64,000 nt of DNA, taken from positions 1,302,001 to 1,366,000 of the forward strand of contig LSRY02000021.1 in the NCBI GenBank assembly GCA_001643675.2. Direction: 5' to 3'. A program made the translations under genes and the position numbers. Below are positions 2,739 through 55,389 of this stretch, piece by piece; within the stretch, counting starts at the first letter, position 1, and each line of letters opens with the position of its first letter. Source of the DNA: Monocercomonoides exilis PA203 (Eukaryota > Protista > Preaxostyla). The notes beneath the pieces were generated by a model. It was not told the DNA's origin. It made no database searches and saw nothing but the letters and a program-made list of their open reading frames with translations.

Positions 2739-3773
2739 ATGTTGAGCATATCGTGTTCAAAACAAGAGATAAATGAATTGAAAATATAATTTTCATGCAA
2801 CGAATGTTCATTTGACAGGATCATCAACAATATCCTAAACACGAATGAAGAAAACTGTTCAAATTGTGGATCAAAAATGTGTGTTTATAAAAGATCTGAA
2901 ACAAAAAGACTAAATAGATGCTCAAATTGAGGAAAATCTATAAGCTTATTTCATATTGCTTCCTTTTTCAATATCAAAATTCATTTTAACAAATTATAGC
3001 ATATTCTTCTAAAAAACTGTCTAAAAATTAATATCTCACAGACGTGTTTGTAGCGGAATCCTGATAGAAGAACAGTTTCATTTTGGCATTCTCATTGCAG
3101 ATCATCTTCTGTCAAGTTCTTATTTGAAGATTTTGAAGCGATCGGAGGTGAGGTGAGAATTGTTGAAATCGATGAAACACCGTTGAGAAGAAGGAAATAC
3201 CACAAAGGAAGGAGGAATTTTCAAATTTGGTTATTTGGAGGAATTGAATGGGCTGATATAGAAAGAAAGAGCAGATTTTTCATTATTAGAGTTGAAAAAA
3301 GAAATAAAAGAACATTATTACCGTTAATCCCATCAAATATCAAACCGTAAACAACAATTTATACGGACGAATGACCAGTCTGCAAGTGTTTGCTGGAGTA
3401 TAACAATATTCATCAAACTGTGTGTCATAAGTTTCACTTTGCAGATCCAATCACAAAAGTGTGCACAAACAGCATAGAGAGCTTATGGTCGAGATTTCGG
3501 AATTGTTTACCAAAATTTGGAGTGAGAAACAAATATATTGGCGATCGCCTTGCTGAGTTAATGTTTCATAAAACCAAAAAAATGAAATTTCATTCATTCA
3601 TAAAAAGAATATTGTATTCAATTCCAGAATCTGAAAACCCCGATGAAGATCCAGAAGATAAAACAGAAGATGAGTCAGTTACGCCTTTTTTTGAAGAATC
3701 ATTAGAAGATACATATTAAGATGAGTTTGGGGCAGGAGATGGAGAATCAGCATCAGAATATCAAGAGGATTAA
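2739..3773 (+). pseudogene. Merlin / IS1595 (ISXO2-like) DDE transposase pseudogene
   Basis: One continuous frame from ATG 2739: Zn-ribbon CSNC...CSN*, IGGEVRIVEIDET, RKYHKGR, WLFGGIE, TLLPLI, TTIYTDE*, HQTVCH..F.DP..VCTNSIESLWS, then an acidic tail. In-frame stops at 2787, 2928, 2997, 3051, 3348, 3372 and 3717, with no frameshift. Confidence 0.9.
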
Positions 3774-3863
3774 AAATTTGATCCCACAAATTTTTATTTT
3801 TCGTTTATTTTATTTTTCGTTTTTTTCGTCATTATTTGAAACAACATTGTTTCAAACATGATA

Positions 3864-21900: not shown

Positions 21901-24463
21901 TCGAGCTGAGCCTGGCGAGGAAATTGCAAGTGTCTGCTTTTCTTCACCATCAACAGGCGAGTTCTGGTACGAGTTGCGACTCCGTTGCGAAGATGTGGAA
22001 CCTGAAGTACTGCCAGAGATGGTGTGCGAGCTGGGAACCAACGCGATTCAGACTGTTGAAATCGAGAATCCACTACCAATCACCATCCATCTACAGTGTC
22101 AGTCGTCAAATCCATCGATCTTCACCATATCGCCTGTCTCAATTTCATCTGCAGGTCTGAGAGGAAATGCACCCCGCACGCTGACTGAGTCTCTGAAGCA
22201 GGCAGGAATAGTTCCATTGTCTGTCACACAAACAGCCAAAGGCACAACTCTTATGACGACACGCGGTGCAGATGCGATGTCGCTGGGAATGGCTGTCAGT
22301 ACCATCGGCGTCGATCCATACGGCAAAGCACAAGCATTGGTGAAGTACCTGCCGTCCGCTGTGGATCGCGTAGAGACTGCGACACTGTCACTTGTGTCAG
22401 AAGATGCAGGCACCTGGACATTCAAGGCATCTGGAAAAGCGACAAAGCCAACAGTTCTACCTCCAATACAGATTGTTTCACTGGTGCAGGAGAGTTCGTC
22501 AAACATTGTGTCGTTTTCGAATCCGTTTGCATATCCGCTTCTGTGCGATATCCTTTTGGAAAATGACCCCATCCCATACGATCCATTACAGCCACTTTCT
22601 TACACACACTACATTTCATCAACCGGAACTGCTCCAAAATCTACCACATCATTTTCTTCGTCAACATCACCTTCTTCTTCTGATCCTTCCAGAACACCTT
22701 CATCGTTCACTTCAACTCCTACTGGCTTCGTTGCACAGACACCCATTTCATCGTCTTCTTCTTCCACTTCATTGCACTCACAGTTCAGATCTTCGCTTTC
22801 CCGATCTTCAGCTTCTTCCACTCCCAACCGCATTTCGACTGCATCATTTTCACCACAGCGACATGGTGCTGTCGCATCATCAGCTTCGTCTTCTGTTTCC
22901 TCTTCTTTGGCAGATCTTCCCGAAGCTATTGATCCGCGTTCTGCCAATCCTTCAACGTCAACTGCACCGAAAATGCCCAACAAGCTATTTTCAATCCTAC
23001 TCAAAAATCTTTCACATGTTCGTGTTGAAGGAAGAGATACGCTCCAAATACCCGTTCTGTTCTCGCCCAACGTGCTCACGACAACATACTGCCGTATCTT
23101 CATTCGTGCATATGCTGACAAAGCACATCCATACAGCGAAAAATCACCCTTCACACCTGCTTCACCGCTGACGTGGACACAGCCAATTATTGGCATTTCA
23201 GAGAATTACTTCCCACGCCTGCCAATTGTTGCACTGAGGCCATCAACCTCTGACGATCCCTCTGCACTCCGCCAATTGCAAGCAGACCGCTTTGAATCGA
23301 CGATGGGATCGCGCAAGACAGCACAGATGATGGCTGCACAGGGAGTGCAAGACAGCTTTGTTGCTGCTATCAGCACAATCACAGGAACGCCTGCATTCAA
23401 AGAATTCACGCTGCCACTTTCTGGACTGAATATTACAAAGCGGGTGGTGGACGAGTTTATCAGGCTGTGCGTGGCAAACAACTTGATTGAGCTTCCTGAG
23501 ATGTATCTGAGGAGACAGGAAATGAATGGGCTGATGGCTATTCATTCAGCAGGATCTGAACAAGATGTCTCCAAATACGTCTCTGCTGCCTCAGAGCTCT
23601 CCGCATCGCCTTCATCTAGTCGGTTGGGAAGCAGACAGGGCTCTCGTAACATGCTGTCTGCTGGGTACTCTTCGCAGGCAGGAACACCATTTTCTGCCAC
23701 AAATCGAAGTGCTCGCTATTTCGGAGGTGCTGACAAGCGAAGTGAAGGACTCACGCAGCTTGCGCTGCCAACAGTGTCAGAAGGGATGGAGACAGACACA
23801 CCTCCGTCAGATGAAGAATGGAACACATTCTATCAAATACTATGCGAAGTGATAGATGTCAGCATTGAATGCGATGATGAACGAATTCAGTCCGCATTGA
23901 CCGTCCCATTGGCTCCCTCTTCTCCTTTGGATTCATCTCCCAATCCAGAAATATTTACTCGCGATCCAACAAATATTTTTGTGTCTCTTCCGATTGATTT
24001 TAATCCATCAGAAACAATTCCTCGCACCCGCGCGAGCATCGTGCTTACAAGACTACCTATTGCAGGAGGAGGACGCTGGCGTTATTCGCTGACATTGGCA
24101 TCGACACAACCACCCGATGTGGTTGAGCAAGGCCCGCTGCTGACAGCGCTTGTTGGACAGCAGTCTGTTGGAGTGATAGAAGTGTTTAGCCCACAGCACA
24201 AGAATTGCCCATTCCATGCAACTTTCAAGTCTGGTCTGATTGCTGAATTTGCGCTGGGGCAAAGAGATGGAGAGTTTGATGATGAAGGAAGATTGCGCCT
24301 TCGTGTCTCATTCCATCCAACACGATATGCGGGAACGCGAACTGCCATTATCTCGTTGACATCCGAATCAAAGCAATGGCTCTTCTCAGTGAAAGGAGAG
24401 TTGCCCCCTTACGAAGCTCCTACTGGCAGTTCGAAGGTTAATTCTTTCAGAACTGGCAAGTAG
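9956..24463 (+). CDS. CFAP47: Cilia- and flagella-associated protein 47-like (tandem ASH/Ig-like domains plus a calponin-homology domain), 4835 aa
   Basis: Uninterrupted ORF with many ASH/PapD-like repeats (IDFG.V, P..G.L..G). CH domain LLLRWISYH...VTNYSSDLSDGVALLTLIKAHAP...HPDPRSLFLFIYSLYQTLP, followed by C-terminal Ig-like repeats (GEFWYELRL, DAGTWTFKASG). This is CFAP47 architecture. Confidence 0.85.
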   Translation: MKTVFDVSPKEVWFNDFENGETYTKQIVVHNSSLQTRQLRVLKPHHNEFQLKNVNQNISIAPGLSYSFQITFCTFDDLIFDDELVLHSESIFRSNEKDQWTFRLPLHARLPSPDIRWDPIIDFGSVSSGSIPSGYLRIWNAGTRQGSFRFIIPPDSPIRILPLGGTLSPIDEEGQMILAMGDFENSTFQTTQGSTMYLTESQTTSQSDLFSTIETKTQKRRGELTEFTHSASATATGTSSFSQSSVLRARVEFNAQKTGEFHCEIEVEAETKMEEKLLYIKGTVVQQRVKLALRTSPACPLTQLNFGSLFYGENKTVEAILSNTGPQKCSFALSQHSKELQLLVYSINNTEIDGTSFAGSITKSTTTNVNSSTSPQIPEFGKSKSRGNTRASARDEKSKDRSLNLDRSSSDGMRQELSHVADNDEDPFLSGMPPPMKRITPRDSTEGPSPFTELISNRSNCKHIAVTPTIGSIPPFGSVTLSFAFNPPPLSLTRDIFPGQHIEGESVNLMMTMDVAETGQKMYVSLNGTVTQPLVVLDKETIDFGDCFLNDRADVLLRIRNDTENLPVSFAFGKIAFVSAKPAEGKLKSGETAVVRVTFSPAQLGFLSSKLPIKLCGGVKTIYVSCTGHTITPIPATISLSSTPVPGAMTKNFSSPGSSRLLTPSVASRGLSPSYSSHPRSSSTGASSSPAHSLFSGGSPFAKNKTQVAKSVAESKPSTATLLRRQMRSASVAATGGVTVATPGDFQHKRTFAAGTLRSFNEFQDSPNFVDSDNALSSLLFGENKGKRRKDSEDEDGQGPNPFALKRRPATSASTFRSQSSHHLGRLGNDRDGEQRFGLTNRTGRFSSATLHSSHSVQGIRGLSPAERRIKYFQLLQEKRSMSAQRSASQPSEMKTNEMQTKTRDFTDKAETDEANKEHYTQFIRTKHMERTMQQAKRSDGALIVKKDGLPTIVRLKGIRSKRSDEGNLDMTGSMNMEFGYGNGDEGTGDERDVVRTGYDAFNDSDLGLATDLLDSEASVPLLSECVRPERVFQLSQPGTGGAAGGRNGGQQGMLKPKVRAQLSDVLKIIKHKYKAEPTTAIEFKEIRSQLSASDIALLSIGTRMIDFGRVCVYSRTVRSLNIANDLPSNVRVGLAITNPELRLSAPHSQIVPPGAMAGFDIVFLSDVPQSFSAQILVQCNEANVFNVAVKADVIPISLELSSNEVQLAFNSSNLCRSCGETILINNPGNHPADFEWERDVSLPCIEEGLYTDGGMFVEGEGIDTTALVPVDLTKQQLLMFGSRNREMESIVEIEQSTISTWAAMGKSRVDLTSDSQDGKIMNESKVSEAKMTTEQQAEELEPMQHTLRADNFFITPQRGTVPAFGSVAVHITFDPTSLPAPPPSSMQTSSASASSSSSSSHQSHLQTALFTMHVDGGADRNLRVFGEVAEGKAEFVEKSIDLGQFAVGTEAVRHVTLKCIGKQDAVFFVENTKKKKAEKEQNETDEAAEPDKIEGEKEEEKGEITVTPEMGVISAGSQQMLTVRVCSHRAQKIAETVTLSIRGGAEALLKVAAEAVEPLVEIVEQNTDFGEVVVGNNRKRRITLANSGNIAAVLFCDLSNKPEFTLSQISNASQRLPTPATPTASASITQTPRMRPLSSRSSVTSRTVSSPFASQFNQPIPLGAQATTRTPLPPDQSSIYKPNNKQTAFSHDQLPGNRGNLLTAISPSFIPQDVRAAIAARRRKKGEGNGFDDGEDGNADSDKYAFDDDSDDVAEKAQAAHIRTLSVTTTLQNTKDALQRAIQSESERERKRKRKKRRRRRKGSRGSEIEGKEGTGAFGEFSNISDGEDSSTSSQTDRSLFSKSNSEWDEDSSSEEEGNSASYQPLNATSRTMNTQSTQNRPGTALSRLSTSSTGTAAKSASGAAGSASQPSQSSLLSTISSSTTISDVWGKWNGMGAFKSYEVPLQGCEDYLAIHPECSQLPSFSRPVLPNNAPLKGTRIAEPPFALMSQNVQQEMLRMGGSNTHRNSTDDLLLLDPKQTMQHKKRKKRELEMSTIEEVEEEERKEKSSHRGSSGKDGRTTHRSKHGRKHRHHLSGSPSASHHRRNSSKRNFGSAGADSATTLSSRAANSSSSSSPSELITSLEEAQNLTAYRIEIQPQSSLILELIYTAAEIGEHEFSFFFLLSAAQSESATTSLTRAVFARGVPPRLIVTPRVIEFGARVVSTLSKPLHKEVVHLLNCEKTPLHWSVRNEEEIDGVTNVFQINPTEGTLAAGQEEDVVITFHPTELKAYSATLPIHLNDDPIEYCQLELSALGVPPLLIFEPREIVIPPVPLGFTSVARVVIRNVGYESVDVTAQPPADSALLPLRVSFPDGNTLTINKQTLTAEISFVSSKTTSFSTTINFFDSFANSFPLVVHAASDNDILNTTGYLLRTFSLNRIVQDKIDSIPQLKESALCSEQTAHAAGHLGRYGLKQESNEKAKTDESKNGEADEQLLTVTDQTQNRSKSPTTSILSSTSTSSGLPSSSSSSSSSSSSASTSTQQQETSQLNSTSQMTGAMTSSLASSSFTMSSNAPQFCLPAIPSSLPNVLLRFLNSFFLISQIASWPGSIVEQYGIPLFESLEHLYGQEIPGRLTLEKIHAASTSFNPEVLKPHQSISCVISSSSSSYSSTSGFSTFTSTPLSPTASISSAQPSTTSMLSVSIPNPSSSYLPPSFGAISPTSFISSLSRPSTQSSMRGSQKSVYTQMFPIDSSFAQSATKGIQLLQQLTSRTVPHSEYLRKLLSHFDSVLLFLREHGAALPGLKAEYLLSYTDFVRFAADNFSASLFEYPPPDYNKVLFAFQQSEELQQTFQIVSLNAWTFLTFQVLKMFLFSKLNAKKFKQTPGIAFMKEVKEEDEMQSKRSRDSRPTSSIGTKSRISPKTVTVQSSKASGKMGLNAISPSLSGKSATDASNASKDSKITDRSSIKGFKPATKASLNQQENNISSGKAATTQRSTSPGDAGRMRASLIVAQPFDLLVANKTLSRINSSNVYSSAQVLLLRWISYHTLRNAPRRRSFVTNYSSDLSDGVALLTLIKAHAPFLHFHLYESPKNEEERMKNARNVVASVKQLGIQCLVNESDIIHPDPRSLFLFIYSLYQTLPFCVPQTIVDIPACAGVASTQMVTVNNSGHRTITYALRIEGEGKEDFSTDIDSITIEPESSEDIAVTVRPRFSKTTHAVLFLLPKNNTGLQTPPLSFRLKTSVLPPQPIAKYSVAAPLYCTAFTEIKITNPFLSECTLIAKLLRPKEKKTEDNKENPNVRSNISSQAPMNKNVKPTQSRKNTSSSLDGLLGILEGISNDKQNDQKKDVNEQSDSKKLVRKGSHSRNGSASVISSPAALSAFNIVVPPEVNIGSNIDYLPFRIHASQFTLPIGASVALQVRFSPVSLGLQKCQIFFRDDQQGEFTIEIEGIATMPEPAEVVTITSVVDKSTTHDMLVSARNRNFDALRGEVATFDKALFASSPKQGELVPYKVELSSSAFTAPKEINIPFESAPIVEKKKANDRDSSVGGSSLLTSTTTGIVGNIIRLPVTFAPKALGEYRCRLLLRSAWDMRVFELKGIAQAPGIHGSLEMVTAARHPIKQEIPIVNNTITEWFIKAQINPTNGQCGVGYNMVFSGPASIRIPGKSTVCYPLLFNPRKACEATAELVMWNTSLQAASTSSSSSSPSPSVGAEKTVYTIKGISDDPLPEGTLTFDCIARQEIKQAIKVPAITSHLASRYSVICDVSSCSGASTLVAYPVDYSPESAANVLFAGEDDAKIQKDRQRSNSVSARSSPINSPKAQSSSFSEQAFEQPVSYTGFADYELTIFSPHSGIEEGKLLFSTDDGECVWWKVRVECKQPAIEESISVQTIVRQPVSVSISLFNPSEERVTFNVSIYGTNALTGPEEMLLDPFETGSYQLIYAPIEPTLLSAAEKSRSNRRSSTPGTPSQSSREHSNPSSPRTHSPSSHGSSSPSTPRSSVRAEPGEEIASVCFSSPSTGEFWYELRLRCEDVEPEVLPEMVCELGTNAIQTVEIENPLPITIHLQCQSSNPSIFTISPVSISSAGLRGNAPRTLTESLKQAGIVPLSVTQTAKGTTLMTTRGADAMSLGMAVSTIGVDPYGKAQALVKYLPSAVDRVETATLSLVSEDAGTWTFKASGKATKPTVLPPIQIVSLVQESSSNIVSFSNPFAYPLLCDILLENDPIPYDPLQPLSYTHYISSTGTAPKSTTSFSSSTSPSSSDPSRTPSSFTSTPTGFVAQTPISSSSSSTSLHSQFRSSLSRSSASSTPNRISTASFSPQRHGAVASSASSSVSSSLADLPEAIDPRSANPSTSTAPKMPNKLFSILLKNLSHVRVEGRDTLQIPVLFSPNVLTTTYCRIFIRAYADKAHPYSEKSPFTPASPLTWTQPIIGISENYFPRLPIVALRPSTSDDPSALRQLQADRFESTMGSRKTAQMMAAQGVQDSFVAAISTITGTPAFKEFTLPLSGLNITKRVVDEFIRLCVANNLIELPEMYLRRQEMNGLMAIHSAGSEQDVSKYVSAASELSASPSSSRLGSRQGSRNMLSAGYSSQAGTPFSATNRSARYFGGADKRSEGLTQLALPTVSEGMETDTPPSDEEWNTFYQILCEVIDVSIECDDERIQSALTVPLAPSSPLDSSPNPEIFTRDPTNIFVSLPIDFNPSETIPRTRASIVLTRLPIAGGGRWRYSLTLASTQPPDVVEQGPLLTALVGQQSVGVIEVFSPQHKNCPFHATFKSGLIAEFALGQRDGEFDDEGRLRLRVSFHPTRYAGTRTAIISLTSESKQWLFSVKGELPPYEAPTGSSKVNSFRTGK

Positions 24464-41401: not shown

Positions 41402-42651
41402 AATTGTAATGATGAATTTGTTGATAGAAAAAAATAAAAATTAACACCCATAAATAAATAAAATATTCTGATCAAAGAAATTAATTATACCATAAATTAA
41501 TAATTTTTTTATGAAAAAAATCAATTTTGAAAGATATTAACTTATTTCTAAATTAAATTTGCAAGGAATGTCAGAATTCTATCCGTGAAATGTGATGACA
41601 AAATATTTGTTAAAAAAACAAGCTTTCCAAAGTAAAGAGAAAGAAAGAAAAATATTAAAAAAATGAGAGAAGTGATTAGAACAATTTGCAGCAATGATTA
41701 TTGAACCAATATTGGTTGTTTTGTTGTTGAATGTACCAAAAGTCTCCATTATTGTTTCAAATCGGTTGAGAACACGAATGAAAGAGGATGAAGACCAGAA
41801 ATAATTTTACAAAATATGGCAATTTATTTTTTTTTCTTTATTTTATTTATTTTTTTTTTATTTTATTTATTTATTTATTTTATTTATTTATTTATTTTTT
41901 TTGATAACTTCCTTTTGTTTAATTGTCAAATTAAATAAAAATTTCATCAAATTTCTGTTTTCACTCAGAAGTTTCACTAAAATGGAAACAAAACCTTAAC
42001 ATTGTTATTATTATCATTGTAGTGAAGTTACGTAAGTGTGAACAGAAATGTGATGAAAACATGGGGGAAAATACGGACTTTCAAACTTTTTATGCACAAA
42101 ACATGAAACAATCTTTTCTCTCAAAGCTTTACACATCTTTCTCAGATTTCAAAATAAATTGGATTTTCATATCAGTCCACAAACTTCATTGATACCATGT
42201 AATAAAGTTCTGTCACATCCCACAAATGTCAGAAAACGATCCCATTTTCGTTGCATTTTTCAATCACAAAAAGCTCATCTTTGGTGCATAATTTGTCAAT
42301 GAAATGTTTGAAATCAAATATTGTGCCCCATGTATTAAAATTTCAATTTTTGACAAATAGTAAAAATCTCGCAAGTCTTTTTATCACTGCTTTGAAATTC
42401 TCTTGTCATGTTAGAGATGTCAAATTTCAATTTGAAGTTCGGATGATGAAGGAAATCAAAAATATTACACAGAGAAGTGAGGTGCTTCTGCGCAGATGGC
42501 TTGCTTCTTCAACGAAAAGCAATGCAAGGCTTTGGTGAAAAAGCAATTATGAAACAACATTTGTTGAAACCAGATGGCATTTCCTTTAAACCTGTGTGAC
42601 GTGATGAAGATTTTGTCTTCACGTCCGTCAGTTTTGATTTTTCACGTCAGT

Positions 42652-42700
<49 letters not shown>

Positions 42701-43149
42701 CGTTGATTTAACATTCTCGATAAAATTTTCCATTAGCAATTGTTCTTTTTCAATTTTAAATAAATATTCACATAACTGGTTAAAAAAATAGTTCTCGTAA
42801 CTATCCCTTAATTATTTTATTAATTTTTGATATGAATGAATTATGCTAAAGAAAGAAACATCAGGAATATTCTGCCAGACAATCTTCATATTGTGTACGC
42901 ATGCTTATTCATGTTTATGCACATAAGTTCTATTTGGCTTAACAGAATGTATTTATGTTTGTGGTATGTTTTTTCTTTTTGAAATTATTTTCTTTATAAT
43001 TAAACTTTATGTGATATTTCTGATGCACTTCACATTAATCTTTTTGTGTCGGATTGAGGATTTGAAGCAGACACATTATTCCTCTTTTTATAAATTTTTA
43101 TTGGGATTTTTTTTTTTTTTTGATTCGAATTTATAATATATATTTTACC

Positions 43150-43925
43150 ATGGAATTCTCTTTTTCATCTTCTCCTCCACCTTTGTTATATCATTCTTCA
43201 TCTCAGTAGCTTCCTCATCATTTTTTACACAGCAAACACTTCCACAAAACACGCTCTTCATCAAATGGATATGTGAAACAAATTGGAACTGAATTCTAGC
43301 AAGAAACACATGAAAAACTGACTTCGTTTGATCAGAACAGTCATCGCTTTGAATAATGTGAATGGGATGATTCAAATGGAGGATCAAGTGATGGAACAGC
43401 GCTTTATGTTAACAGAACAAATGCAAATCTCTCAATCAATTCTTCTTCATTTCATTCATCAATATCTTCTTCACCAGATCCATCTGCCTCTTCTGCTCTC
43501 TTTCAACAGACCCAGGGTTCCCTCACAGTCTCTGTAATCTCCATCGCTCACAACTCCTCAAATCCAATCACACCCATCCTCTTCCACCTCTCCGAAAACT
43601 CCCCTTCCCTCTACCTCAGCACGACCACCATCACCGGAAAAACACCATCTTCTTCATCAATCACAACCCCCCTCTTCTTCCTGGCTGCTGGCTCCCTCGC
43701 CCTCAACCACACAGCAATCACCAGTCTCGCCCTCAACAGTCAAAGCATCTTCCACCTCACCTCCCTCACAACACCCCTCACCCTCAACTCCTCCAACATC
43801 ACCGATATCACCTCCACTGCCTCCCCCACCAGCTGTGTCCTCTCCTCTGCCACCTCCCCTGCCCTCTCCCTCTCCCTCACAAACTGCACCATCACCAGCA
43901 TCGACTCAGCTCCACAACACCAACA
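43150..43925 (+). pseudogene. Captured fragment of a beta-helix (pectin-lyase-like) surface-protein gene inside the transposon
   Basis: ATG-less open frame from about 43357: CEWDDSNGGSSDGTALYVNRTNANLSINSSSF...LFQQTQGSLTVSVISIAHNSS...LTLNSSNITDI...LSLTNCTITSI. It resembles the family members at 60887-62036 and 47536-55389. A hydrophobic signal-peptide-like remnant (ILFFIFSSTFVISFFISVAS) lies at about 43155. Confidence 0.65.
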
Positions 43926-45361
43926 GAGTGCCACAAATAGCTGGTGCATGTTATTCGCCTCATCTATTTCTGCCTGCATGCTTTTTATTTTAAAGCTCAA
44001 ACAAAGCAAGGTGCGGTGTGAGCGAAGAAGAATTTAAGAATTAGAAAGAGAGAAAAATTAAACCTCAGCTATTGGATAGGGTGGATGAACATGAAAGGAA
44101 AACCCAAATGAAACCTGTATCAAGTTGATCAAGGAAGAGCTTTCTGCGGGGATGATGGGAAAAAGAATGATACAAATGATATTTTAAAAGAAAGAAGAAG
44201 AGAATTGAAATAAGGAGAAAAGATACAAAAGAAGATGAATGAATAAGCCAAATGGCTGTTTCATTTCGCAAGCTTTAAATGATTTATTGGTTAATAAAAA
44301 CAATTAAATAAAATGTGTTAATTTTTTTTTAATTTTCAAGATGAATTACAAAGTATTATTTAATTAAAATAATAAAAAATCAAAAGGCTTTCAAAATATC
44401 ATCTGTATATTTCTCGGGTTTGATGTGAGATATTGAAGAAAAAATATAAAAAATTTAATGAGCATAAGCTTAAAATAATAAATAAACTTATTCAACAATG
44501 AATCCACTTTCATAACTTCCAAGAAAAATCACGAAACAAAAAATATTACATTCATTCGAACAATGATTCGTCCCTTCCTTTTCATTGTGCAAAGAAAAAA
44601 AGAATCTAGCATTGTTATGAAAGTCTTTTGTGATTATCTTCATTCAATGCAAAAATCAAATTAAAAATTTTTGATCATCTTTCAATTCTTCCAGCTGTTA
44701 ATAACTCGTCCATTTCGCAATCCTCATCCTCAAGAACATTTGTTGAATGTTTGCACCATCAAAAATTTTTTTTCTATCACTCGTTTTTGAAGAACAATTT
44801 TTCAGTCGTAATGTTCAGTTGGTTTTTTTTTGAAAAATTGATCCCAATTTTTCAAGAGATAAAGATGAAGAAAGCTAACGATCCAAATTGATTGAAGATA
44901 TTGATATCCGCTTATCAACGTTGTCGGGAAAAAAAGATGAATGGGAAAAAAAAACGAAAATAACATTTTTTGAAGAGGAATTTGTCGAAGCCGAATCTTC
45001 AATATATTTGAAAGTTAAAACAATGAAAAGAAAACTTTATGATGACTGGCTTTGGTCATTTTTGTGAATTTTGTGAGCTTGTCAATAAAAAAATTGTTCA
45101 ATGAAATTTCTCTTTTGAAACAAACCATTTTCCGATGTTATTTCAATCTGGATGAATTGTTAAATTTCCTTGAAATCAAGTTTTCTTTGTGTGTTCTTGC
45201 TGCACGTGTTCAATATTGATTTGTTCCATAATAATTTGATTAAAGCGTTAAAAAACTTCATCGCACGATTCTATTTCACCTTCAGCAAAGCAAAATGCAA
45301 CTTTTTCACCAATTAGTATTTATTTCTAATTTTTGTCCAACATTGAAATGCAGACTTGCCT

Positions 45362-45379
45362 TGACGGTCATGACCGTCA
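45362..45379. repeat. Perfect 18-bp palindrome TGACGGTCATGACCGTCA
   Basis: Read directly. It is built from the same TGACG/CGTCA motif as the element's TIRs and subterminal repeats. Confidence 0.85.
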
Positions 45380-47535
45380 CCGACGATCTAAAATTCCTTT
45401 TTTGCCTATTCGTCAGTATCCCATTGTAAATTTTTTTTTGCAAAGTGAGAAAAAAATGTTTTTTGATTTTCTTATTATAAATAATAATTTATAATAATTA
45501 ATTAAAATAAATTATTTGATTTTTTTGAGTTTCAGCGAATAATTTTAAAAAAAAAATATTAGTGACGTGAATATTTCAGATGAGTCCGTCAGAATTGAAA
45601 TTTTTCACGTCAATGGTCATTACGTCACACAGGTTTAATTTCCTTTTTAATATTTGTTGTTTTGTTTGAAAGTATTGTAATTTTTATTTTTGTTTTTGTT
45701 TATTTCTTTATTTAATTCATTATTTTTTTTTATGCAGAAAAAATGGTTGTTTTAAAAAAAATTCTTTTTGTTAAATTTTTAAATTAAATAAAGTCGATTA
45801 TTTTCTCAAATCTCAATCGACGCTCAAGAAAATCACTGAAATAACAATTATAACTTGATAATACTATTACACACATTCTTGTTCAAATACATGAGTGGAA
45901 ACAAAAATTTGATAAAAATATAAAATTTATGTTTTATTTGAGAATAAAACTAAAGAAAATTAAAAAAAAAAATCACACAGATATTATTTCTTTTTCTTGT
46001 GCAGTGGAATTATTTAACAAGTCTGTCAAAAAATCGTAAAAAAAAAAACATCAGGTGTCAGTTAGTCACTCAGTGTTTTTTTGCATTTTGTATTAAAAAT
46101 TATCATTTTTTTAAGAAAATCTTTTGGAGTAATTTCTGAAATTAGAGAAGGAACCATCTGTTTGACTGATAAATAATTTGAATCAATCACGAACCGTTAT
46201 TCCATTAATTTTTTATAAAGAATTCAGAAAAGACCAATTTGGTGCGATAGAAGAGTTGATGTTCATCATTCATTCAGAAGTGCCTCGTAAAGAGCAATTA
46301 GGGTGATGTCTTTATTGGTAGCATGGAATACGAGAAGCTGCGATATCTTCAAACCGGGAAAATGCTTTGAATATTCGGTTTTTAAAAAAATCTCATGATT
46401 TTCCTCCCCCAAAACATAAAAATAAAAATGGTAATTATTCACTTTCCAGAGTTTGTTTTTTCCTTTTGCTTTGTGATTTCATTTCATTTCTTTTCTTTTC
46501 TTTTTTAAACAATTGAAATATGGAAACCCCCCGCTATCTGAAAAACAAGACATGAAAATAGGCCCATTGCTGGGACTAAAAATGGGCAAATGAAAGCATT
46601 CTTGTTGTGAAAAGACAAAAAGAAAATATGCTGACGATATTCTTTTTCACTCGACACATGTGCATCTTCTGGACAGATTATCACTTTTTGTTATTGTGAT
46701 CAGCAGGCATTTGTGTCCTTGCAACATCTTTGTCGATAAATCAAAACAGATTGTCCTCGCATTTGGCATGCACAAAATAAGGAAAGCGTGTGCACTCTCC
46801 AAAGCGCCCGTTTTCCGAGTTGGAGCACAAACAAGAGCAGATAGGCATCGTCTGGGTTTCTGATTTTATTGCTGTCTGGAGAGGCGAAGGATTCAGGGGT
46901 GGGGGTGGGTGAAAGAATGCTTCTGTGATGAGAACGCTGCCATCAAGCGAGATGCGCTTGTTGGAGCTGGAAGCATATTGCTCTTTGAATCGAGATTTTG
47001 GAACAGATTCCATTTCTTCGGGTCTTTGAAGGCACATGCACATTAAAGCTATTTATTATTTTCACAACAGCCTTGAAATGGATCGAAGCTTCTGTCAAAG
47101 AACTGGTGAAAAGAAAAGAAAAGAAAGGAGAGAAATGGAAAGAATTCTGCGTATTTGTTGATTGCCATGAATAAAAAAATAAAATAAAATAAAATAATAA
47201 ATATTTTTGCAGCATCTGCGCAGCTGCACCCGATCAAAAACGAAAGTCTGGCCAGCAAAACAAGATTACAAAACATACGAAAAGGCACGGTGATTGTGAG
47301 ATCACACATTGCTTGGATGGAGGTGCGCAGAAGCGAAGTGGCAATGCTGCTGGCTTGGAAACGCAACACAAACACCAAAAACTTGAATAGCTGAGAATGC
47401 TGCAAAAGCAATTGTCATTGATATTTCTTTCTTTTTTTTCTTTCTCCCCTTTTTTCTTCATTGCGCGATGCAAGCCAGACGGTGGGTGGTGCACAGGCAC
47501 ACAGACACACAGGCTCAAATGCTGGAGGGAGCCAG

Positions 47536-50500
47536 TCAAAACGAGGTGAGCGTCTCTGAGACAGCGGAAGCAGGCAAAGCGGAGGGAGGGGGGATGCCTG
47601 TGGCATCGACGAGGTCGATTGCGTCAGAGGCTGTGAGCATGGCAGAGGCAGGCGGAAACAGCGCGATGAACGCTTTCTTGAGCTCCTGGAGCGTGGGCCT
47701 GCTGTGGGGCTGCTGCGACATTGCGGCGCATGCTGTCTGGCCGAGCGAAATGCCCTCGCAGCTGCACAGTGTTGGCCTCTCCCCGTTCGCAATCTTCTGC
47801 CCGGCAGCTTCTGCTTCGTATTCCCCAAACGGGATCTGCAGCGTCAGGCACTCCCACACCATCATCCCGATCGAAAACACCACCGTCTTCTTTGTTGCGT
47901 GCCCCTTTGCGCCGCTCAGCAGCTCCGGCGCCTTCCACCGCATGCACTCCTTCCTGAAATCATCTTCATCCTCAAACGCCGATGAGGGCGGAGGCGATCC
48001 TCTGCCGTTCCCATTCGCACACGAGCAATCAGAGGAAGAGGTGGCAATAGTTGTGGTTGATGAGATGGACGAAGAGTCAGAATCATCTGAGGAGCAGTCG
48101 GAGTGGAGCGCAATGCAGATGACCATGTGTTCCGAGAACAGCACAATGTGCGGACTCAGATTGGCCAACGATTGGAGCGGGTTGTTCATTTCGTCGAAGG
48201 AGTGGAGCGCAAGATTTGCCACCCAGAACAGGATCTGAGCAGCTGTTTGCTCTCTTTCCTGCAGAGTTCCAATTGCCATCTCCTTTGTCTTGTTCCTCCC
48301 GTGAAGCAGCATGAACATCGAATCCCTCAGATCCACAATCAGCTTTTCGTGAGGCGATGAACAGGCCATTGCATCCACCAGATTCGACATCGACGAGGTG
48401 GTGGGGCACAGATCCTCTCCCCGAACAAAAGTGGATTCAGTGTCTGAAGTGTCTGTGGTTGAAGTGGATGAAATGGATGGTGATGGTGTTCGCTTTCTGG
48501 TCTCTTCCTCCTCCTCTTCTTTCTCATCCACCTTCTCCAGCATCCATTCTGGGATCTTGTCTGAATCCCTTCCCAAAATATATTCAGTTGATCCACTCTC
48601 AGAAAGAAGGTGCTCTGATGACTCCGAGTGTCCCAAACTTTTCTCATACACCCTCTTCTTCATCCTCTCTTCGTTCTTCTTCTCTGCCTCCCTCTCAGCT
48701 CTCCTCCACTGCTCTTCAGGCGACATCTCCATTGTCACCATCTCAATCAATTTCGGATCTTTTCTCACTGTATCATTCACAATCTCCCTCAGATCTTTCG
48801 CTTCATTCTTGACCTTTCTCCATCGAATTGTCACAACAATCGATACAATCAGAACAATCACAAGAATAACTGCCATGATTATAACAATAATCGGCCATAT
48901 AGATTTTTCTTTCTTTCCTCCTTCAACAATCTTTTCATCTCCTTTTGGTTCAGATTCACTTTTGTTCTTCAGAACAAAAGATTCTGTGGAAGATGGATTA
49001 GAAACATTTCCAAACAATATGCACACAGCCACTTCTGCTTCTGTTGGAGCAGAGCTTACCAAAGACGAACCTATCTTGCCCTGGACTTCTTCCTCAGAAA
49101 CAAACTCATCTTCCGCAAAAGCGTGAGTCTCGATTGAGCTGACATTGTTTATTTTTGACACAATCTGGAATCCCAGATTGCATGGCAGAAGAAGCGTCCC
49201 TCTGAAAGTCAGTTCAACAGTATCTTCTTTTTGAGTTGTTTCAACTGACTTCAGCGTTGGAATGAAGAACTCGGATGATCTTTCAGCAGCAATCCCCAAC
49301 AGCTTGCATCCTTCATTCAAAATCCAAAGTGAAGTATTTCTTTCCCATCCATCTCCTCCTTTCAAATCAACAACATTGAGTGTTCCGCTGCCTGTGCAGA
49401 ATACATTTCTTCTTGCAGACCTGTATCTTTCGATTCTTTTGCTGTTATTCTCAAACAAGCAGCTTTCGATAACAGCACTTCCACCACTGATCGACAGCCC
49501 GCCTTTTGAAGAGTTTGTGATCGATGTGTCCTTCATCTCCAGCAACCCTTCACACACATCAACAACCGATCCAGTCCATTTGCACACATCCTCATCTGCT
49601 CCATTCTTTTCGCTCTGATGCTCATCCTCACATCCAATCAGTTCGCATGACTGCAGAGACAGAGATGCCCCAGATGATATTTCCACCAAGCTCCCTTTCT
49701 CTGAAGGTGTGAAGCATCTTTCAAACGAACAATTCAACAATTGGCTTCTTGTTTTTTCACACGCCGACTCAACCACATGGGAATTGCTGCTGCTGCTGCT
49801 GCTGCTGGTGATGTTTGAGAACGATGATATGCCCATCTGCAGAACAACCCTTTCTCCAGCATCTTTCTCATTCACATGCTGATTCTTCCCCTTTGCCAGA
49901 GAAATAAAGTTTTCCCCACACAGCCGAATGTCAGATGCAGCCAGCTGCATGATGTTCACTGATGCACTCGACTCAACAATCATTGCAGTTGCAGTTGTTT
50001 TTATTGTGGATATCTCGATCTGGTTCAGAGTGGCAGCTGACCCACCCTTGAAGAGGAACAATGGCTGAGCTGTGCCCATCACACATATCGAGCTCTTCTC
50101 CATCTCAAACACTCCTCCTTCAACCACAATAACACTCGAATTGAGAGTAGACTCAACAGATGATGACTGCAGAGTGCAGCCTGAAAATGCCAACGATCCA
50201 TTCAATTGCTTCATAATCGCTGTGTGCTCTGCTGAGAAATGCTCGTCAAACGAAAACAAGCAGTCTTCGACCAAACACTCGTTTTCAAACAACATGATCC
50301 ACGATCCCTCAGACTCCTCTTCAATCGATGAATTGAAATGAATTGCTGATTGGTGTTTGGTGATCGACTTCAGCGTGAGATCGCTGACGACTGTCGGCTC
50401 AGCCACCACACTCGATGAGTCAACACATATCGCATTGAACAGCCCAGCCTGCACATGCCTCACTCCGTGTGACACGCTTCGACAAGGATTGTCCTGCTTC

Positions 50501-53500
50501 CCACACTGGTTGCTGTCTTCAGACTCCATCGACACAAACACCTGCGGCGTGTACAGAAATGTGATCAGCGGGATGAGATCGATGTCTGAATGTGCTGAGT
50601 CGCTCCCACAGATCGATGTGTTCATGCGCAGCGAGGGCTGCGAAAAGTCAAGAGCGAAAAGTGTTTCGTTGATCTGCTCACCGATCGAATGGCAGTTGAT
50701 AAACACATCCTTCCCCATGAATGCACTGTTCATCATGAATTGAACACTCGCAACGTGAAGAAGAAGCGGTTTGGAAGGGGTTTGAAAGGGAGCATCTGGA
50801 TCGCAAAAGTCCAGCATCATCCCGCCTCCTCTCCCTGTGCTCTCAGAACAAGCACACAACACAAATGTGCAGTTTTTCACTCCCAGGCTCGACTCCTCAT
50901 TCTTCATGTGCATCATCAGCCCTCCTCCTCTGTTGCTTTGCCGGCTGAGGCAGTTCCAGAACGTGCAGTTCTCCATTCCACACTTCAATCCAGCAAACTC
51001 ATCCACACCCAAAAACACTGATCCTTCCTCAGTTCTCGACACATTCTCGACTGTGACAGATGTCATGTTCATTGATGGGCAATCCACTGGCAAATCGGGT
51101 GAATCTCCTAAAGCCAACTGATTTGAATGGAGTCCAGTGGGGAAAACTGATATGAAACTGTCAGAAGAAACAGACGAATTGATGAACGATGTGTTGTGCA
51201 TGTGCGCTGAATGGAAATTGGCTGACAGTCGCAGAAAAGGATTTGCCAGAGACAAAGTCGCAAGTGCACAGTGCTCCAGGGAGACATCCCCTTCCGCAAT
51301 GTCAAGCACACACAAGGAAGAAGAAGAAGGAGACAAGGTGTCAGATGGAATGAACCTGCAAAGAGAGAAAGACACCGAATACACAGAGCGGATGAATGAT
51401 TTGTGGAACTCATATCTGCTCGGAAGATCGATTATTAGGTTTGAAAAGGAAGCATTCACCGAGTTGGAGATCAGCGAGCCATCATCCGAGGAATCTCCAT
51501 CACCAGATACGAACAAGTGCACAGCCTCATCACCTCCTTCAACTGAAATCAAAGGCCGGTTTTCATCAGACGGTTTGGAAGGCAGCAAGGATACTGAATG
51601 TTTGAGTGAAGCTGATCCTTCCACTTTGATGATCGATTTCTCCAAACCAACTGGAGAGAATCGCATTTTGATCATGTGGTCGATCGAGGAGCATGGCGCT
51701 TCTGAATATCCACATCCACTGAAGCCTCCTCCTTTCTCTTTCGAAACAAACCCTTTCCCACTCCAATTTGACCACAAATACACAACAAGCGGGATCTCAT
51801 ATTCTTCTCCTGTTGTCATCCCTTCCCATCCACACAACTCATCCAGTGATTCCAACTCCTCTGAACTCATCTCCCATTTCAAATGATCCTTGTTCACAAC
51901 TTCCCTCAAATCCCATCCTGAAACAAACAGATTCTTCCCTTTCCAGGCATTGCATCCCTCAAATGTCATTCCTTCCATCACAAATTTCTCTATTTCCTCT
52001 GGCAATGCAACAAACATTCCTCCTCCCATTCCCTTTCCTCCATCCTCAATATCCACTGACGGAACTTCACATTCAGACAAATTCACATTTTTCATTTCCA
52101 AACTCCCTCCACTTCCAATTAATATCATCATCCCTCCTCCTCTCAGTCCTTCTTCGTTTTTGCACTTTGATGATATGTTCGTGTTTTTGATCGATATGGT
52201 TCCTCCCCCACTCGTTTCCACTTTCACGCATCCTCCACTTCCTCCCTCGTTTGCCATCTCTGTCAATGTGCATCCCTCAACTGCCACTCGTGATGCTCCG
52301 TTCACATTGATTGGCGAAAGCTCAGCGAAAGTGATATCCTCAGAAACAACCAATCCTGTGAGCTCCAATTCACCTCCACTCACATGAATTAACGAAAATG
52401 CCACAGAGCTCGCAAGAGTGTCAGCTGAAAATACAATCGAAATATTGCTCAAAGAGAGAAAGATTGATGACTGAATAATCGAAGATATTGAGGAAGGAAG
52501 AACACGAGGAAGAGCAAAAGAGAGAAAAGACAGAGAAAAGCTGCCAGAGCACTGAATAACATTGTGGCAGTCAGTGGAGATATTGTCAGTCAAGCCAACA
52601 TTCACCAAGGGATATTGGCTCGAAGAAGATGATGCAGATGAAGAAGAAATTGATATTTGAGATGTTTGAAACAACGGCACAACAAACGGATTCTTGATCG
52701 ATGCTGATGATATCACTTCCATCGCATTCACAAGCTCATTCACTCGCTCACGAACACAGAAGTCGATTGTTGAACAGCAGAAAACGGAATATCCGCAATG
52801 CGAATGATCTGCACCACTCCTTTCGTCAACTGATATGGGAGATTCAAAATCACACAAATACACACACAGCGGAATAACTGGCAACGATGTCCCATCCTCG
52901 CATCCACACAACTTCTCTTCATTATTCATGCAGTTTCCATCTTTGAAGAATCCAAAGGATGCTTGATCAATTATCTCTTCCAACAAAAGCCCGCTTCCAC
53001 ACTGAACAAACACATCACTTCCATGAAAAGCTCTGTTTGGGTTTTCTTCAGAAAATATCACAGATTCATAAATGGTGAAATCCGATTCAGTCGAATCAAC
53101 ATTTATGAACAACCCTCCTCCTCTCCCCTTTTCCTCAAGACTTCCTGCACAACATCCCTCAAACATTGTTGTTCCATTCACAATCAACTCTCCTTTCCAT
53201 TCTCCTCTCATCCCCAGACCACCACCATCTTTTCCTGCTGACACATTCTCAAAATGGCAGTTTTCAACAACAACACTCCCAGAGGATGCATCATTTCTCT
53301 CAATTATTCCTCCACTTCCTGATTCCCTTTGAATCGATGTGATGTTTGTGTTCACCACGTGCAACACCGATCCAGACTGATTCACATTGAATGAAATCAA
53401 ACTGTCAGAAATGAAATTCATGTCAGAAATTCCAACTCCTGACAATTCCACATTTCCTCCAAATATCTGCATGAAAGACACCTCAAGCAGCAATTTACTG

Positions 53501-55389
53501 TCAACTGATGATATTTCGCATTCCTCCATTGTCAATGATCCATCGCCATCCATCACCACAAATGGCTTGCTTGTCCCACTCTCTGCATCCCCTTGCAGCA
53601 TTGTCACTTTCTGAACACAAAAGGTTCCAGATGAAATTTGAAAAACTGATTCAAGCGATGATGCTGATTGCACAACACATTCATTCTTTGACAATCCACA
53701 AACGCTGAATTCATTGGATGAAATTGATATTTGTTCTTCTTTGAACACACTTGGTCGCAGGATGAGAGTTTTGTTCGAATTGCTTGTTGATCTTCCGAGC
53801 GAATATTTGATAGAGCGACAAAAAGGGGCAAAACCACACTGCTCATGATCAATGCCAACTGAATAGTCAGCTGTTATTTGATAATTATTCTCATTATTGG
53901 TCATCCACGAACTCAGATCTGATATATCAGTGCAAGTGTAATCACCGTTTTTGCATCTTGTGATTCTCGGGGAAGCACTTGAAGAATAGCAATCAGTAAT
54001 GTTGTTTTCATCAATCGTCATCCACTGATGATAACATCCAATGTGAATATCATGTCCGTAAGCATTATTTTTTGCTGTATTGTTATGGAAAAGACAATAT
54101 TTAATGTTTATTGAAGGATTATTAAGTTCTTCTTCTTCTGCGAAGAATATACAAGGAGCATAATTCCCACTTTTGCAATTCTGCATCGAACAATTTGAAA
54201 TCAATATAAATGTGCTTACGCGCCATATATGAGTAACTGCTGAATATGCTTCTGAGCTTGCATTGTCGAAAACACATGAAACAACGATGCATGGATTCTT
54301 ATTGCATGCAGCCCAATAAAAACATGTTTTGCTGTTTGAAGAACAATTGATCATCGAAGTCACATTTATCACTCCAGAATCAATATCCCCACATTGAAAT
54401 CCTCCTGTTTCTCCTGGAGACGAACATTTGCACACATAACAATTTTCAGAAACAAATATCCCATTTGAATGATACATAGCAACAGCACCACAACCGATTT
54501 TTGAAGAGCATTCCAAGAATGAACAACGGTGAAGTATTATTGATGCATTTCCCTCTGCTTGCAAGGCGCCACCAGCTTCATCACTCTGAACATTGAATGT
54601 GCCATCGTCAAACACATTTTCTCCTTCTGTGAAAATTTGTCTTTTGTTATAAGTTGTGAAGCATTTCAAAAACGAACAATTTCCACTTCGAAAAGAGATC
54701 ATCGCAGGCGAAAGAATGCCTCCAGAATATGGACTTTCACAACCAATCATCTCCGTTCTTTCCACCAGGACTCGGTCAGAGCATCCATTTCCATTGTCGC
54801 ACTTTTTCATTGATTTTGGCAAAGTGATATTTTCGAACAAAGAATCCGATACAGATATTGATGAAAGACAACTTGAAGAAAGAAATGGCTCATTTCCATG
54901 AACTTCAAATGATGAAATCCTTGAAGAAGACAAGCACAATTCACCACAATGATGAAGAACTTCCTTTGAACGATGTGCAATCAAAGACGATAATTGGCGA
55001 TCATGAACCACAAAATTGATTGAAATATTGCTGAGACATATTCGGCCTGCAGAACAGCCAAGCAGATTTTTTGATTGTGGATGGACTGAAAACGAACAAC
55101 AGCAAATATCCAGTCTCGAATGTGAATCAACTGATGCAAAATACTTCTCCATGTTCATGAAATATGAAAGTGTAGACAAGTTAATTGTTGAATTCTGGAC
55201 AACAAAAAATGAATGATCATTTTCCGCTTCACCTTGCATGCTCTTTTCTTTGTTTGTCTGCTCAAATGATAATCCTTGATTATCTGAACTCAAAATTGTT
55301 GTTGAACAACAACAAAATTCAATTCCATCAATGTTGTTTCCAGAAACCAACAAACAAAATAAGAGGCACCCTATAATGAGCAAATTCAT
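47536..55389 (-). CDS. Type I membrane receptor-like protein: signal peptide, tandem beta-helix modules, TM helix, cytoplasmic TKL-like pseudokinase, 2617 aa
   Basis: N-terminal MNLLIIGCLLFCLLVSG, GGA(I/L)/F..C repeats, four G.D...CG....C.S(I/V) module starts and TM IWPIIVIIMAVILVIVLIVSIVVTI. Kinase C-lobe RWKAPELL, VVFSIGMMVWECLTLQIPF, IANGERP and RPTLQEL is present, but no HRD or DFG motif. Confidence 0.85.
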   Translation of the reverse strand: MNLLIIGCLLFCLLVSGNNIDGIEFCCCSTTILSSDNQGLSFEQTNKEKSMQGEAENDHSFFVVQNSTINLSTLSYFMNMEKYFASVDSHSRLDICCCSFSVHPQSKNLLGCSAGRICLSNISINFVVHDRQLSSLIAHRSKEVLHHCGELCLSSSRISSFEVHGNEPFLSSSCLSSISVSDSLFENITLPKSMKKCDNGNGCSDRVLVERTEMIGCESPYSGGILSPAMISFRSGNCSFLKCFTTYNKRQIFTEGENVFDDGTFNVQSDEAGGALQAEGNASIILHRCSFLECSSKIGCGAVAMYHSNGIFVSENCYVCKCSSPGETGGFQCGDIDSGVINVTSMINCSSNSKTCFYWAACNKNPCIVVSCVFDNASSEAYSAVTHIWRVSTFILISNCSMQNCKSGNYAPCIFFAEEEELNNPSINIKYCLFHNNTAKNNAYGHDIHIGCYHQWMTIDENNITDCYSSSASPRITRCKNGDYTCTDISDLSSWMTNNENNYQITADYSVGIDHEQCGFAPFCRSIKYSLGRSTSNSNKTLILRPSVFKEEQISISSNEFSVCGLSKNECVVQSASSLESVFQISSGTFCVQKVTMLQGDAESGTSKPFVVMDGDGSLTMEECEISSVDSKLLLEVSFMQIFGGNVELSGVGISDMNFISDSLISFNVNQSGSVLHVVNTNITSIQRESGSGGIIERNDASSGSVVVENCHFENVSAGKDGGGLGMRGEWKGELIVNGTTMFEGCCAGSLEEKGRGGGLFINVDSTESDFTIYESVIFSEENPNRAFHGSDVFVQCGSGLLLEEIIDQASFGFFKDGNCMNNEEKLCGCEDGTSLPVIPLCVYLCDFESPISVDERSGADHSHCGYSVFCCSTIDFCVRERVNELVNAMEVISSASIKNPFVVPLFQTSQISISSSSASSSSSQYPLVNVGLTDNISTDCHNVIQCSGSFSLSFLSFALPRVLPSSISSIIQSSIFLSLSNISIVFSADTLASSVAFSLIHVSGGELELTGLVVSEDITFAELSPINVNGASRVAVEGCTLTEMANEGGSGGCVKVETSGGGTISIKNTNISSKCKNEEGLRGGGMMILIGSGGSLEMKNVNLSECEVPSVDIEDGGKGMGGGMFVALPEEIEKFVMEGMTFEGCNAWKGKNLFVSGWDLREVVNKDHLKWEMSSEELESLDELCGWEGMTTGEEYEIPLVVYLWSNWSGKGFVSKEKGGGFSGCGYSEAPCSSIDHMIKMRFSPVGLEKSIIKVEGSASLKHSVSLLPSKPSDENRPLISVEGGDEAVHLFVSGDGDSSDDGSLISNSVNASFSNLIIDLPSRYEFHKSFIRSVYSVSFSLCRFIPSDTLSPSSSSLCVLDIAEGDVSLEHCALATLSLANPFLRLSANFHSAHMHNTSFINSSVSSDSFISVFPTGLHSNQLALGDSPDLPVDCPSMNMTSVTVENVSRTEEGSVFLGVDEFAGLKCGMENCTFWNCLSRQSNRGGGLMMHMKNEESSLGVKNCTFVLCACSESTGRGGGMMLDFCDPDAPFQTPSKPLLLHVASVQFMMNSAFMGKDVFINCHSIGEQINETLFALDFSQPSLRMNTSICGSDSAHSDIDLIPLITFLYTPQVFVSMESEDSNQCGKQDNPCRSVSHGVRHVQAGLFNAICVDSSSVVAEPTVVSDLTLKSITKHQSAIHFNSSIEEESEGSWIMLFENECLVEDCLFSFDEHFSAEHTAIMKQLNGSLAFSGCTLQSSSVESTLNSSVIVVEGGVFEMEKSSICVMGTAQPLFLFKGGSAATLNQIEISTIKTTATAMIVESSASVNIMQLAASDIRLCGENFISLAKGKNQHVNEKDAGERVVLQMGISSFSNITSSSSSSSNSHVVESACEKTRSQLLNCSFERCFTPSEKGSLVEISSGASLSLQSCELIGCEDEHQSEKNGADEDVCKWTGSVVDVCEGLLEMKDTSITNSSKGGLSISGGSAVIESCLFENNSKRIERYRSARRNVFCTGSGTLNVVDLKGGDGWERNTSLWILNEGCKLLGIAAERSSEFFIPTLKSVETTQKEDTVELTFRGTLLLPCNLGFQIVSKINNVSSIETHAFAEDEFVSEEEVQGKIGSSLVSSAPTEAEVAVCILFGNVSNPSSTESFVLKNKSESEPKGDEKIVEGGKKEKSIWPIIVIIMAVILVIVLIVSIVVTIRWRKVKNEAKDLREIVNDTVRKDPKLIEMVTMEMSPEEQWRRAEREAEKKNEERMKKRVYEKSLGHSESSEHLLSESGSTEYILGRDSDKIPEWMLEKVDEKEEEEEETRKRTPSPSISSTSTTDTSDTESTFVRGEDLCPTTSSMSNLVDAMACSSPHEKLIVDLRDSMFMLLHGRNKTKEMAIGTLQEREQTAAQILFWVANLALHSFDEMNNPLQSLANLSPHIVLFSEHMVICIALHSDCSSDDSDSSSISSTTTIATSSSDCSCANGNGRGSPPPSSAFEDEDDFRKECMRWKAPELLSGAKGHATKKTVVFSIGMMVWECLTLQIPFGEYEAEAAGQKIANGERPTLCSCEGISLGQTACAAMSQQPHSRPTLQELKKAFIALFPPASAMLTASDAIDLVDATGIPPPSALPASAVSETLTSF

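Follow-up and report, generated by a model that had tools for sequence, protein, structure and literature searches.

Transposons of plants, animals and fungi are already known to capture fragments of genes. The subject of this report is an element at positions 42587-45637 of a 64-kb stretch of the genome of the oxymonad Monocercomonoides exilis PA203 (contig LSRY02000021.1, positions 1,302,001 to 1,366,000; this whole stretch is referred to as the window). Our analysis indicates that the element is very probably an old, dead, non-autonomous copy of a hAT transposon with a captured fragment of a receptor gene, and that the capture preceded both amplification and deletion.

The closest described systems are the plant Pack-TYPE elements (Pack-MULE, Pack-CACTA and Pack-hAT; PMC8903248, PMC6379663). 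Like the M. exilis element, these are non-autonomous, are bounded by terminal inverted repeats (TIRs) and a target-site duplication (TSD), contain a host gene fragment, and were mobilized and amplified after capture. The M. exilis element differs from them in its oxymonad host, in the dominance of one captured fragment in a lineage of about 20 copies, and in that no multi-gene chimera is evident in the window copy. The Pack-TIR elements of animals (PMC8277862) are similar in that TIR elements outside plants have captured pieces of genes, mostly as fragments and mostly decaying, although that survey is confined to metazoans. Ac/Ds-type hAT pairs and hAT miniature inverted-repeat transposable elements (MITEs) resemble the M. 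exilis family in the 8-bp TSD and in the short TIR and subterminal motifs common to long and short copies; internal-deletion derivatives and MITE-sized members (304-333 bp in M. exilis) are a further likeness. In contrast to Ac/Ds, the short M. exilis copies share just 65-100 bp or so per end with the long ones and are thus not simple deletion derivatives, and the TIR, which begins TAAACCTG, is not of the canonical CAGGG/TAGGG type. Fungal hAT transduplication, reported from Pyrenophora tritici-repentis (PMC3538342), is alike in that a DNA transposon copies and spreads host sequence. In common with Pack-TYPE elements, the M. exilis element carries no transposase, has intact TIRs and TSD and a host-derived interior, and transposed after capture. 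A preliminary description of the window, made from its letters, had noted no earlier account of such elements in metamonads; in agreement, a limited search of the open-access literature found no description of Pack-type elements or like gene capture in metamonads, and the M. exilis genome papers (PMC8767320, PMC6759080) describe no such gene-carrying elements.

Boundaries and family of the window element

Read from the sequence, the element is 3,051 bp long and is bounded by 21-bp TIRs, which match each other at 20 of 21 positions, and by an exact 8-bp TSD, ATTTCCTT, on both sides (42579-42586 and 45638-45645). The forward read is ggc ATTTCCTT, TAAACCTGTGTGACGTGATGA ... TCATTACGTCACACAGGTTTA, ATTTCCTT, ttt. 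A repeat search of the window recovers the inverted TIR pair, and the 21-mer TIR, with up to three mismatches, has just two sites in the 64-kb window compared with 0.00 expected from 100 shuffles. An open reading frame (ORF) scan of the element found no ORF of 100 or more amino acids. The 3.05-kb segment that the preliminary description had proposed, with 21-bp TIRs, an exact 8-bp repeat and no transposase ORF, is therefore confirmed. The AT-rich arms have a GC content of 21-30%, in contrast to a GC-rich, strongly C-skewed island (51-58% GC) at about 43450-44050. The layout of the element is as follows, where TE-specific refers to the transposable element (TE).

42579-42586, no strand: left TSD copy ATTTCCTT, identical to 45638-45645
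42587-42607, plus strand: left TIR TAAACCTGTGTGACGTGATGA, with a 16-bp core, TAAACCTGtGTGACGT, that is kept across the transposon family
42608-42653, plus strand: left subterminal region with conserved motifs CACGTCCGTCA and TCACGTCAGT, presumed transposase-binding sites (80% consensus of 25 aligned left ends)
42654-42700, plus strand: long poly-T tract in the left arm, with T-runs at the equivalent place in other copies
42701-43239, plus strand: remaining AT-rich, TE-specific left arm (identity 92% to copy L061, 83% to L065 and 75% to L080)
43240-43431, plus strand: cargo piece 1, receptor residues 311-374 of MONOS_16610 (P0056) at 47% identity, with two in-frame stops; matches L074 element positions 644-826
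43432-43456, plus strand: junction of an internal deletion of about 950 bp, a TC-rich, low-complexity stretch of serine codons; junction common to L061 and L065
43438-44001, plus strand: cargo piece 2, receptor residues ~687-863 at 77-82% amino-acid identity, open, without a start codon, 51-58% GC; 3' boundary set by homology to L074 element positions 2331-2336
44002-45559, plus strand: right arm, TE-specific and non-coding, present in about 14 near-full-length TE copies
45560-45616, minus strand: right subterminal region with motifs TGACGTGAA, CTGACGGAC and CACGTCA
45617-45637, minus strand: right TIR, reverse complement TAAACCTGTGTGACGTAATGA
45638-45645, no strand: right TSD copy ATTTCCTT, identical to the left copy

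The ends of the element are multi-copy. The left 74-bp end has 36 matches in the genome and the right 78-bp end has 40, and exact 16-mer TIR ends were found 33 times as ACGTCACACAGGTTTA and 12 times as ACGTCACTYAGGTTTA, compared with none for a reversed-pattern control. Twenty paired copies (L061-L080), 19 of them independent, were compared. Both TIRs are present in each; the 8-bp TSDs are perfect in nearly all of them and vary between copies, and the TSDs of three were read with a 1-base shift, the first T of the TIR being mutated. Two pairs, L062/L063 and L068/L069, are segmental duplicates with common flanks. The family falls into four size groups, of 304-333 bp (MITE-like), 2.8-3.5 kb, 3.9-4.0 kb and 8.3-8.6 kb, the size of the last being taken from paired end coordinates. 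The search of both ends that the preliminary description had called for thus yields paired copies with different TSDs and excludes a single-copy TIR.

Transposons of the hAT superfamily have short TIRs (about 10-25 bp), classically starting with YARNG and accompanied by subterminal repeats, and their target preference is nTnnnnAn. The TIR of the present family is 16-21 bp long with the tip TAAAC, and is accompanied by repeated (T)GACG/CGTCA subterminal motifs. Over 23 independent insertions (the 19 paired copies and four copies of 8.3-8.6 kb), the 8-bp TSDs, nearly all perfect, have T at position 2 in 18 of 23 and A at position 7 in 11 of 23. The two positions combined (29/46) exceed the background of 31% (p~8e-6), the position 7 half of this result being weak.

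The right arm was considered as a transposase remnant or as host DNA; both were ruled out, as it occurs in TE copies alone and has no match to the long copies. Shorter partial matches to this arm are also found at other sites. Outside the element, part of the left flank (42428-42511) is 80% identical to sequences located about 2 kb upstream, on the same strand, of hits to the Pfam domain PF05699 that belong to another hAT family (contigs C52, C43, C33 and C24), and the element may have landed in the remnant of a different hAT transposon. A Pfam search of the flank ORFs (41935-42584) gave no match.

The captured receptor fragment and its history

Receptor homology in the window element extends over about 43240-44001 and amounts to about 0.75 kb in two pieces split by the internal deletion, so that the window copy retains less than half of the originally captured piece of about 1.7 kb. 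The 4-kb copies (L070, L074, L076, L077 and L080) are collinear with it, save that L074 element positions ~827-1777 are absent from the window copy: positions 668-850 of the window element correspond to 644-826 of L074, and 857-3051 correspond to 1778-3983, at 79-83% identity. L074 contains an ORF of 492 amino acids. Residues 1-434 of this ORF match, at 73-86% identity, at least 87 scored genomic loci (from 1,997 first-look candidates), and many of these loci sit in open frames of 2,700-3,100 amino acids, while the last 55 or so residues are matched by TE copies only. At the DNA level, the homology of L074 to loci outside the transposon has sharp edges, from element positions 636/645 to 2321/2336, at 79-85% identity. 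These sharp limits place the size of the captured piece at about 1.7 kb.

The captured piece aligns in a single frame to residues 310-863 of MONOS_16610 (P0056; 2,645 amino acids). By hydropathy and Pfam, this protein starts with a signal-like N-terminus, has a single hydrophobic helix near residues 2205-2221 and ends in a kinase-like domain, whose C-lobe alone matches Pfam (PF07714 positions 162-258). It is a giant type-I single-pass receptor with a probably degenerate kinase. The receptor family from which the cargo derives consists of single-pass proteins of roughly 2,600-3,000 amino acids with a kinase-like tail, and the cargo corresponds to part of the ectodomain. The preliminary description had called the cargo a piece, about 0.8 kb long, of a beta-helix surface-protein gene. 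The gene piece and, by hydropathy, the surface location are upheld, whereas the beta-helix remains weak. In the AlphaFold2 model of the cargo protein, which is of poor quality, the mean predicted local distance difference test score (pLDDT) is 49, and residues 256-427 are all-beta. The top Foldseek rows for this model are all parallel beta-helix enzymes and tailspikes with E>=0.27, and no match was found at E<=0.001; a beta-helix fold is at most suggested by the model. Pfam searches of the cargo and of the TE-borne ORFs, including the 492-residue ORF of L074, gave nothing significant.

A second receptor gene lies 1.9 kb from the element, at 47536-55389 on the minus strand. Its 2,617-residue receptor-like product has a signal peptide, one transmembrane helix at residues 2161-2179 and a kinase match in the C-lobe only, and is 31% identical to P0056 over 2,470 residues. 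This gene was considered as the donor of the cargo and rejected, as a tblastn search with the cargo matches just the element within the window. It is a paralogue of the parent family of the cargo and not the donor. The parental-gene search that the preliminary description had suggested placed the cargo in the host receptor family; the nearest genomic copies of the cargo have 80-85% DNA identity.

These values could also be read in the reverse direction, with a segment native to the transposon that was domesticated into the receptor family, since the nearest matches are just 80-85% identical and many of them lie in the repeat-dense arrays of contig C25. This direction is extremely unlikely. The segment is an in-frame internal part (residues 310-863) of open frames of 2,600-3,100 amino acids, and the 31%-identical paralogue in the window aligns over the same region in an alignment that spans 2,470 residues. 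The segment is GC-rich as the receptor genes are, unlike the TE arms, and the TE-borne versions contain stops and deletions. Between 0.2 and 2.5 Mb, contig C25 contains dozens of copies of the receptor family whose open frames are only about 700-780 amino acids long; these copies often form inverted pairs, separated by a few kb.

Capture from the receptor family was followed by spread of the capturing element. The TE/cargo junctions are common to the 4-kb type, to the 3.2-3.5-kb type (L066, L067, L075, L078 and L079, which keep positions 1-2129 of L074) and to the window type (the window copy, L061 and L065), and copies of all three types with the same cargo and junctions have distinct TSDs. 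The shared junctions across size types indicate a single capture, after which the element amplified to about 20 or more copies. The preliminary description had raised the question of whether the cargo was private to the window copy; it recurs in many copies, joined to the element at the same junctions. Its proposal of a hAT-like non-autonomous transposon that moved a receptor-family fragment agrees with the 8-bp TSDs, the base preference at TSD positions 2 and 7, and the recurrence of this cargo and its junctions at different TSDs. The window copy, L061 (91-92% identical to it) and L065 have a common internal deletion and different TSDs, and therefore the deleted derivative itself transposed. 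The window copy is thus a decayed deletion derivative of the 4-kb subfamily. Because the copies diverge from each other by 8-25% and the closest relative of the cargo has 85% DNA identity, the capture is old and the donor cannot be named.

In the course of events that we propose, an ancestor of the subfamily once acquired about 1.7 kb of receptor ectodomain coding sequence (residues 310-863). This step may have involved template switching or aberrant repair of a double-strand gap after excision, the mechanism usually proposed for Pack-type capture (PMC6379663, PMC8277862). The resulting 4-kb Pack-type element then amplified, keeping its junctions and gaining new TSDs, and a later deletion of about 950 bp within the cargo produced the window-type derivative, which transposed again. 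The window element itself inserted by a cut-and-paste event that duplicated the 8-bp target ATTTCCTT. It may have been mobilized in trans by a transposase from the 8.3-kb relatives, acting via the subterminal motifs.

Many TE-borne versions of the cargo have 1-5 stops, and the window cargo has stops in piece 1 and no start codon in piece 2. The window cargo is a pseudogene fragment without evident function. TE-borne fragments could instead be functional: they could be expressed as small proteins, secreted or acting as decoys, or give rise to antisense or small RNA that regulates the receptor family. Such a role is distinctly unlikely. Some 4-kb copies do keep open frames of 372-492 amino acids, and a TE-borne frame on L078 is annotated as MONOS_3202 (P0009) with a 100% match; against this stand the defects of the window copy and the stops in many TE copies, and the TE-borne open frames are short compared with the parent and have neither signal peptide nor transmembrane helix. 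The public annotation lists MONOS_3202, located on L078:1534-2607 (minus strand), as a protein-coding gene although it is a receptor fragment borne by a hAT copy; the match covers residues 35-392. Another annotated protein, P0015 ('putative nuclease HARBI1', 764 amino acids), combines a Harbinger-type DDE_Tnp_4 domain (residues 184-355) with a receptor fragment (residues 375-637) that shares 77% identity with the hAT cargo. Either a Harbinger element has a like fragment, or the annotation is fused.

Long copies, likely transposase source and possible recent mobility

Long copies with the same ends were found at four sites with the TIR TAAACCTGAGTGACGT and with perfect, distinct TSDs. A six-frame Pfam search of the genome for the hAT dimerization domain (PF05699; curated cut-off 21.4 bits) gave hits above the cut-off in three of these four copies of 8.3-8.6 kb (on contigs C46, C6 and C69) and in a further long copy on C91.

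C46:166025-174322: long copy, TSD AAAGACAG
C6:1160235-1168544: long copy, TSD GTTAATGA
C69:1778451-1786756: long copy, TSD CGTTGTTT
C1:418297-426891: long copy, TSD GCTCAGTC
C46:171126-171242, minus strand: PF05699 hit
C6:1163312-1163428, plus strand: PF05699 hit
C69:1781528-1781644, plus strand: PF05699 hit
C91:681800-681916, plus strand: PF05699 hit

All four hits are located 5.11-5.23 kb from the left end of the element, in antisense orientation. The same search found PF05699 in none of 14 control genomes. At least eight long copies exist, and the first 1.5 kb is 85-90% identical among six of them. Long and short copies have in common the 16-bp TIR core, the subterminal motifs CACGTCCGTCA and TCACGTCAGT, at equal spacing, and subterminal CACGTCCGTCA/CACGTCAGT motifs. 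These shared ends point to mobilization in trans, and the 8.3-kb relatives are the likely transposase source for the short copies. The autonomous copy encoding a hAT transposase that the preliminary description had envisaged thus has a counterpart in the longer copies, with marginal domain scores.

Another superfamily with an 8-bp TSD, such as the P element, Merlin or similar, would explain why the PF05699 scores are marginal (22-24 bits) and the TIR tip is TAAAC instead of YARNG, with the hAT hits being coincidental or coming from a nested, unrelated hAT element. Merlin and other DNA transposons are abundant in M. exilis (PMC8101967), and at least 73 PF05699 hits in the genome make a nested hAT element conceivable. 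We consider this assignment very unlikely, because the hit has equal offset and strand in four long copies with their own TSDs, and the domain was therefore part of the element before the copies spread; the T2/A7 preference in the TSDs is typical of hAT, and the short TIRs and subterminal repeats are hAT-like.

Several observations weigh against the reading of the window element as an old, dead hAT copy with a captured receptor fragment. The TIR does not have the G at position 5 of the textbook hAT tip. The open frames at the PF05699 hits, which score just over the cut-off, are of 138-284 amino acids. The long copies, given their mutual identity of 84-90%, may all be dead. The search for a donor gave no match above 85% DNA identity, and some top 'host' matches on C25 may themselves lie in other repeats. 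Finally, an empty site with a single ATTTCCTT, which the preliminary description had proposed looking for, was not found in the genome; both flanks match across the junction solely themselves.

The long copies contain a further segment of at least 950 bp with 32% GC (in the C46 copy at L022:2117-3065, element positions ~617-1565), which matches more than 30 loci among 276 candidates at 79-84% identity. Contig C25 contains most of these loci (for example, 2425706-2426670), which are situated 2.3-2.7 kb downstream of receptor-cargo homologues and often form inverted pairs. The segment may be a second capture or shared TE sequence. A comparison of the first 1.5 kb of the long copies with receptor proteins gave no match.

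A different cargo is present in subfamily C (L068, L069, L071 and L072), which matches the window copy in no more than its ends (about 95 bp and 54-80 bp). This cargo, which is decayed and frameshifted, covers nearly the full length of its homologues in a second, multi-copy protein family (230-370 amino acids) found in M. exilis only, which has at least 29 annotated proteins and no Pfam domain. Two ORFs of the window, 7082-7720 and 7813-8376 (both minus strand), are members of the same family. L071 (C17:79859-83340, minus strand) and L072 (C17:74570-78050, plus strand) are 3.48 kb each, about 99.8% identical, inverted and 1.8 kb apart, with perfect and different TSDs, CATTACAG and CATTTATC. 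Two further subfamily C copies, at 99%, are on C62. The L071/L072 pair suggests recent and possibly local hAT transposition, or gene conversion. A broader possibility is that the hAT family is an active serial gene-capturer, with lineages that took up the receptor fragment, the second M. exilis-only family and the C25-array segment, and with L071/L072 implying mobility near the present. We regard this as unlikely. If it were true, recombination or small-RNA cross-talk with the largest gene family of the cell could draw on the TE-borne receptor fragments, and the element could be put to use in oxymonads as a native transposon tool.

Elsewhere in the window, a 360-residue ORF at 4444-5526 (plus strand) has a DDE_1 (pogo/Tigger-type) endonuclease domain (E 2.6e-12) and is probably another DNA transposon, and a single open frame of 4,835 amino acids occupies 9956-24463 (plus strand).

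Implications for the receptor family and the genome

Tyrosine-kinase-like proteins are the largest family of M. exilis (PMC6759080), and the receptor topology of the parent family of the cargo fits this published family. In the assembly, DNA transposons make up 4.5%, and 35% is in 'unclassified repeats' that overlap the tyrosine-kinase-like family (PMC8767320). The preliminary description had raised a role for the element in duplicating and shuffling the receptor family. The data do not support such a family-building role. The cargo contains an internal piece of the ectodomain, with stops; the TE copies number about 20, compared with at least 1,997 first-look candidate loci for the family; and no chimeric gene was observed. 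The accepted view of how the receptor family expanded is unchanged by the finding. The present results document, with boundaries at the level of single bases, the capture and spread of a gene fragment by a hAT transposon in Preaxostyla, a group of deep-branching amitochondriate eukaryotes. For the annotation of M. exilis, the TE-borne receptor fragments that are listed as genes, such as MONOS_3202, inflate the counts for the largest family of the genome.

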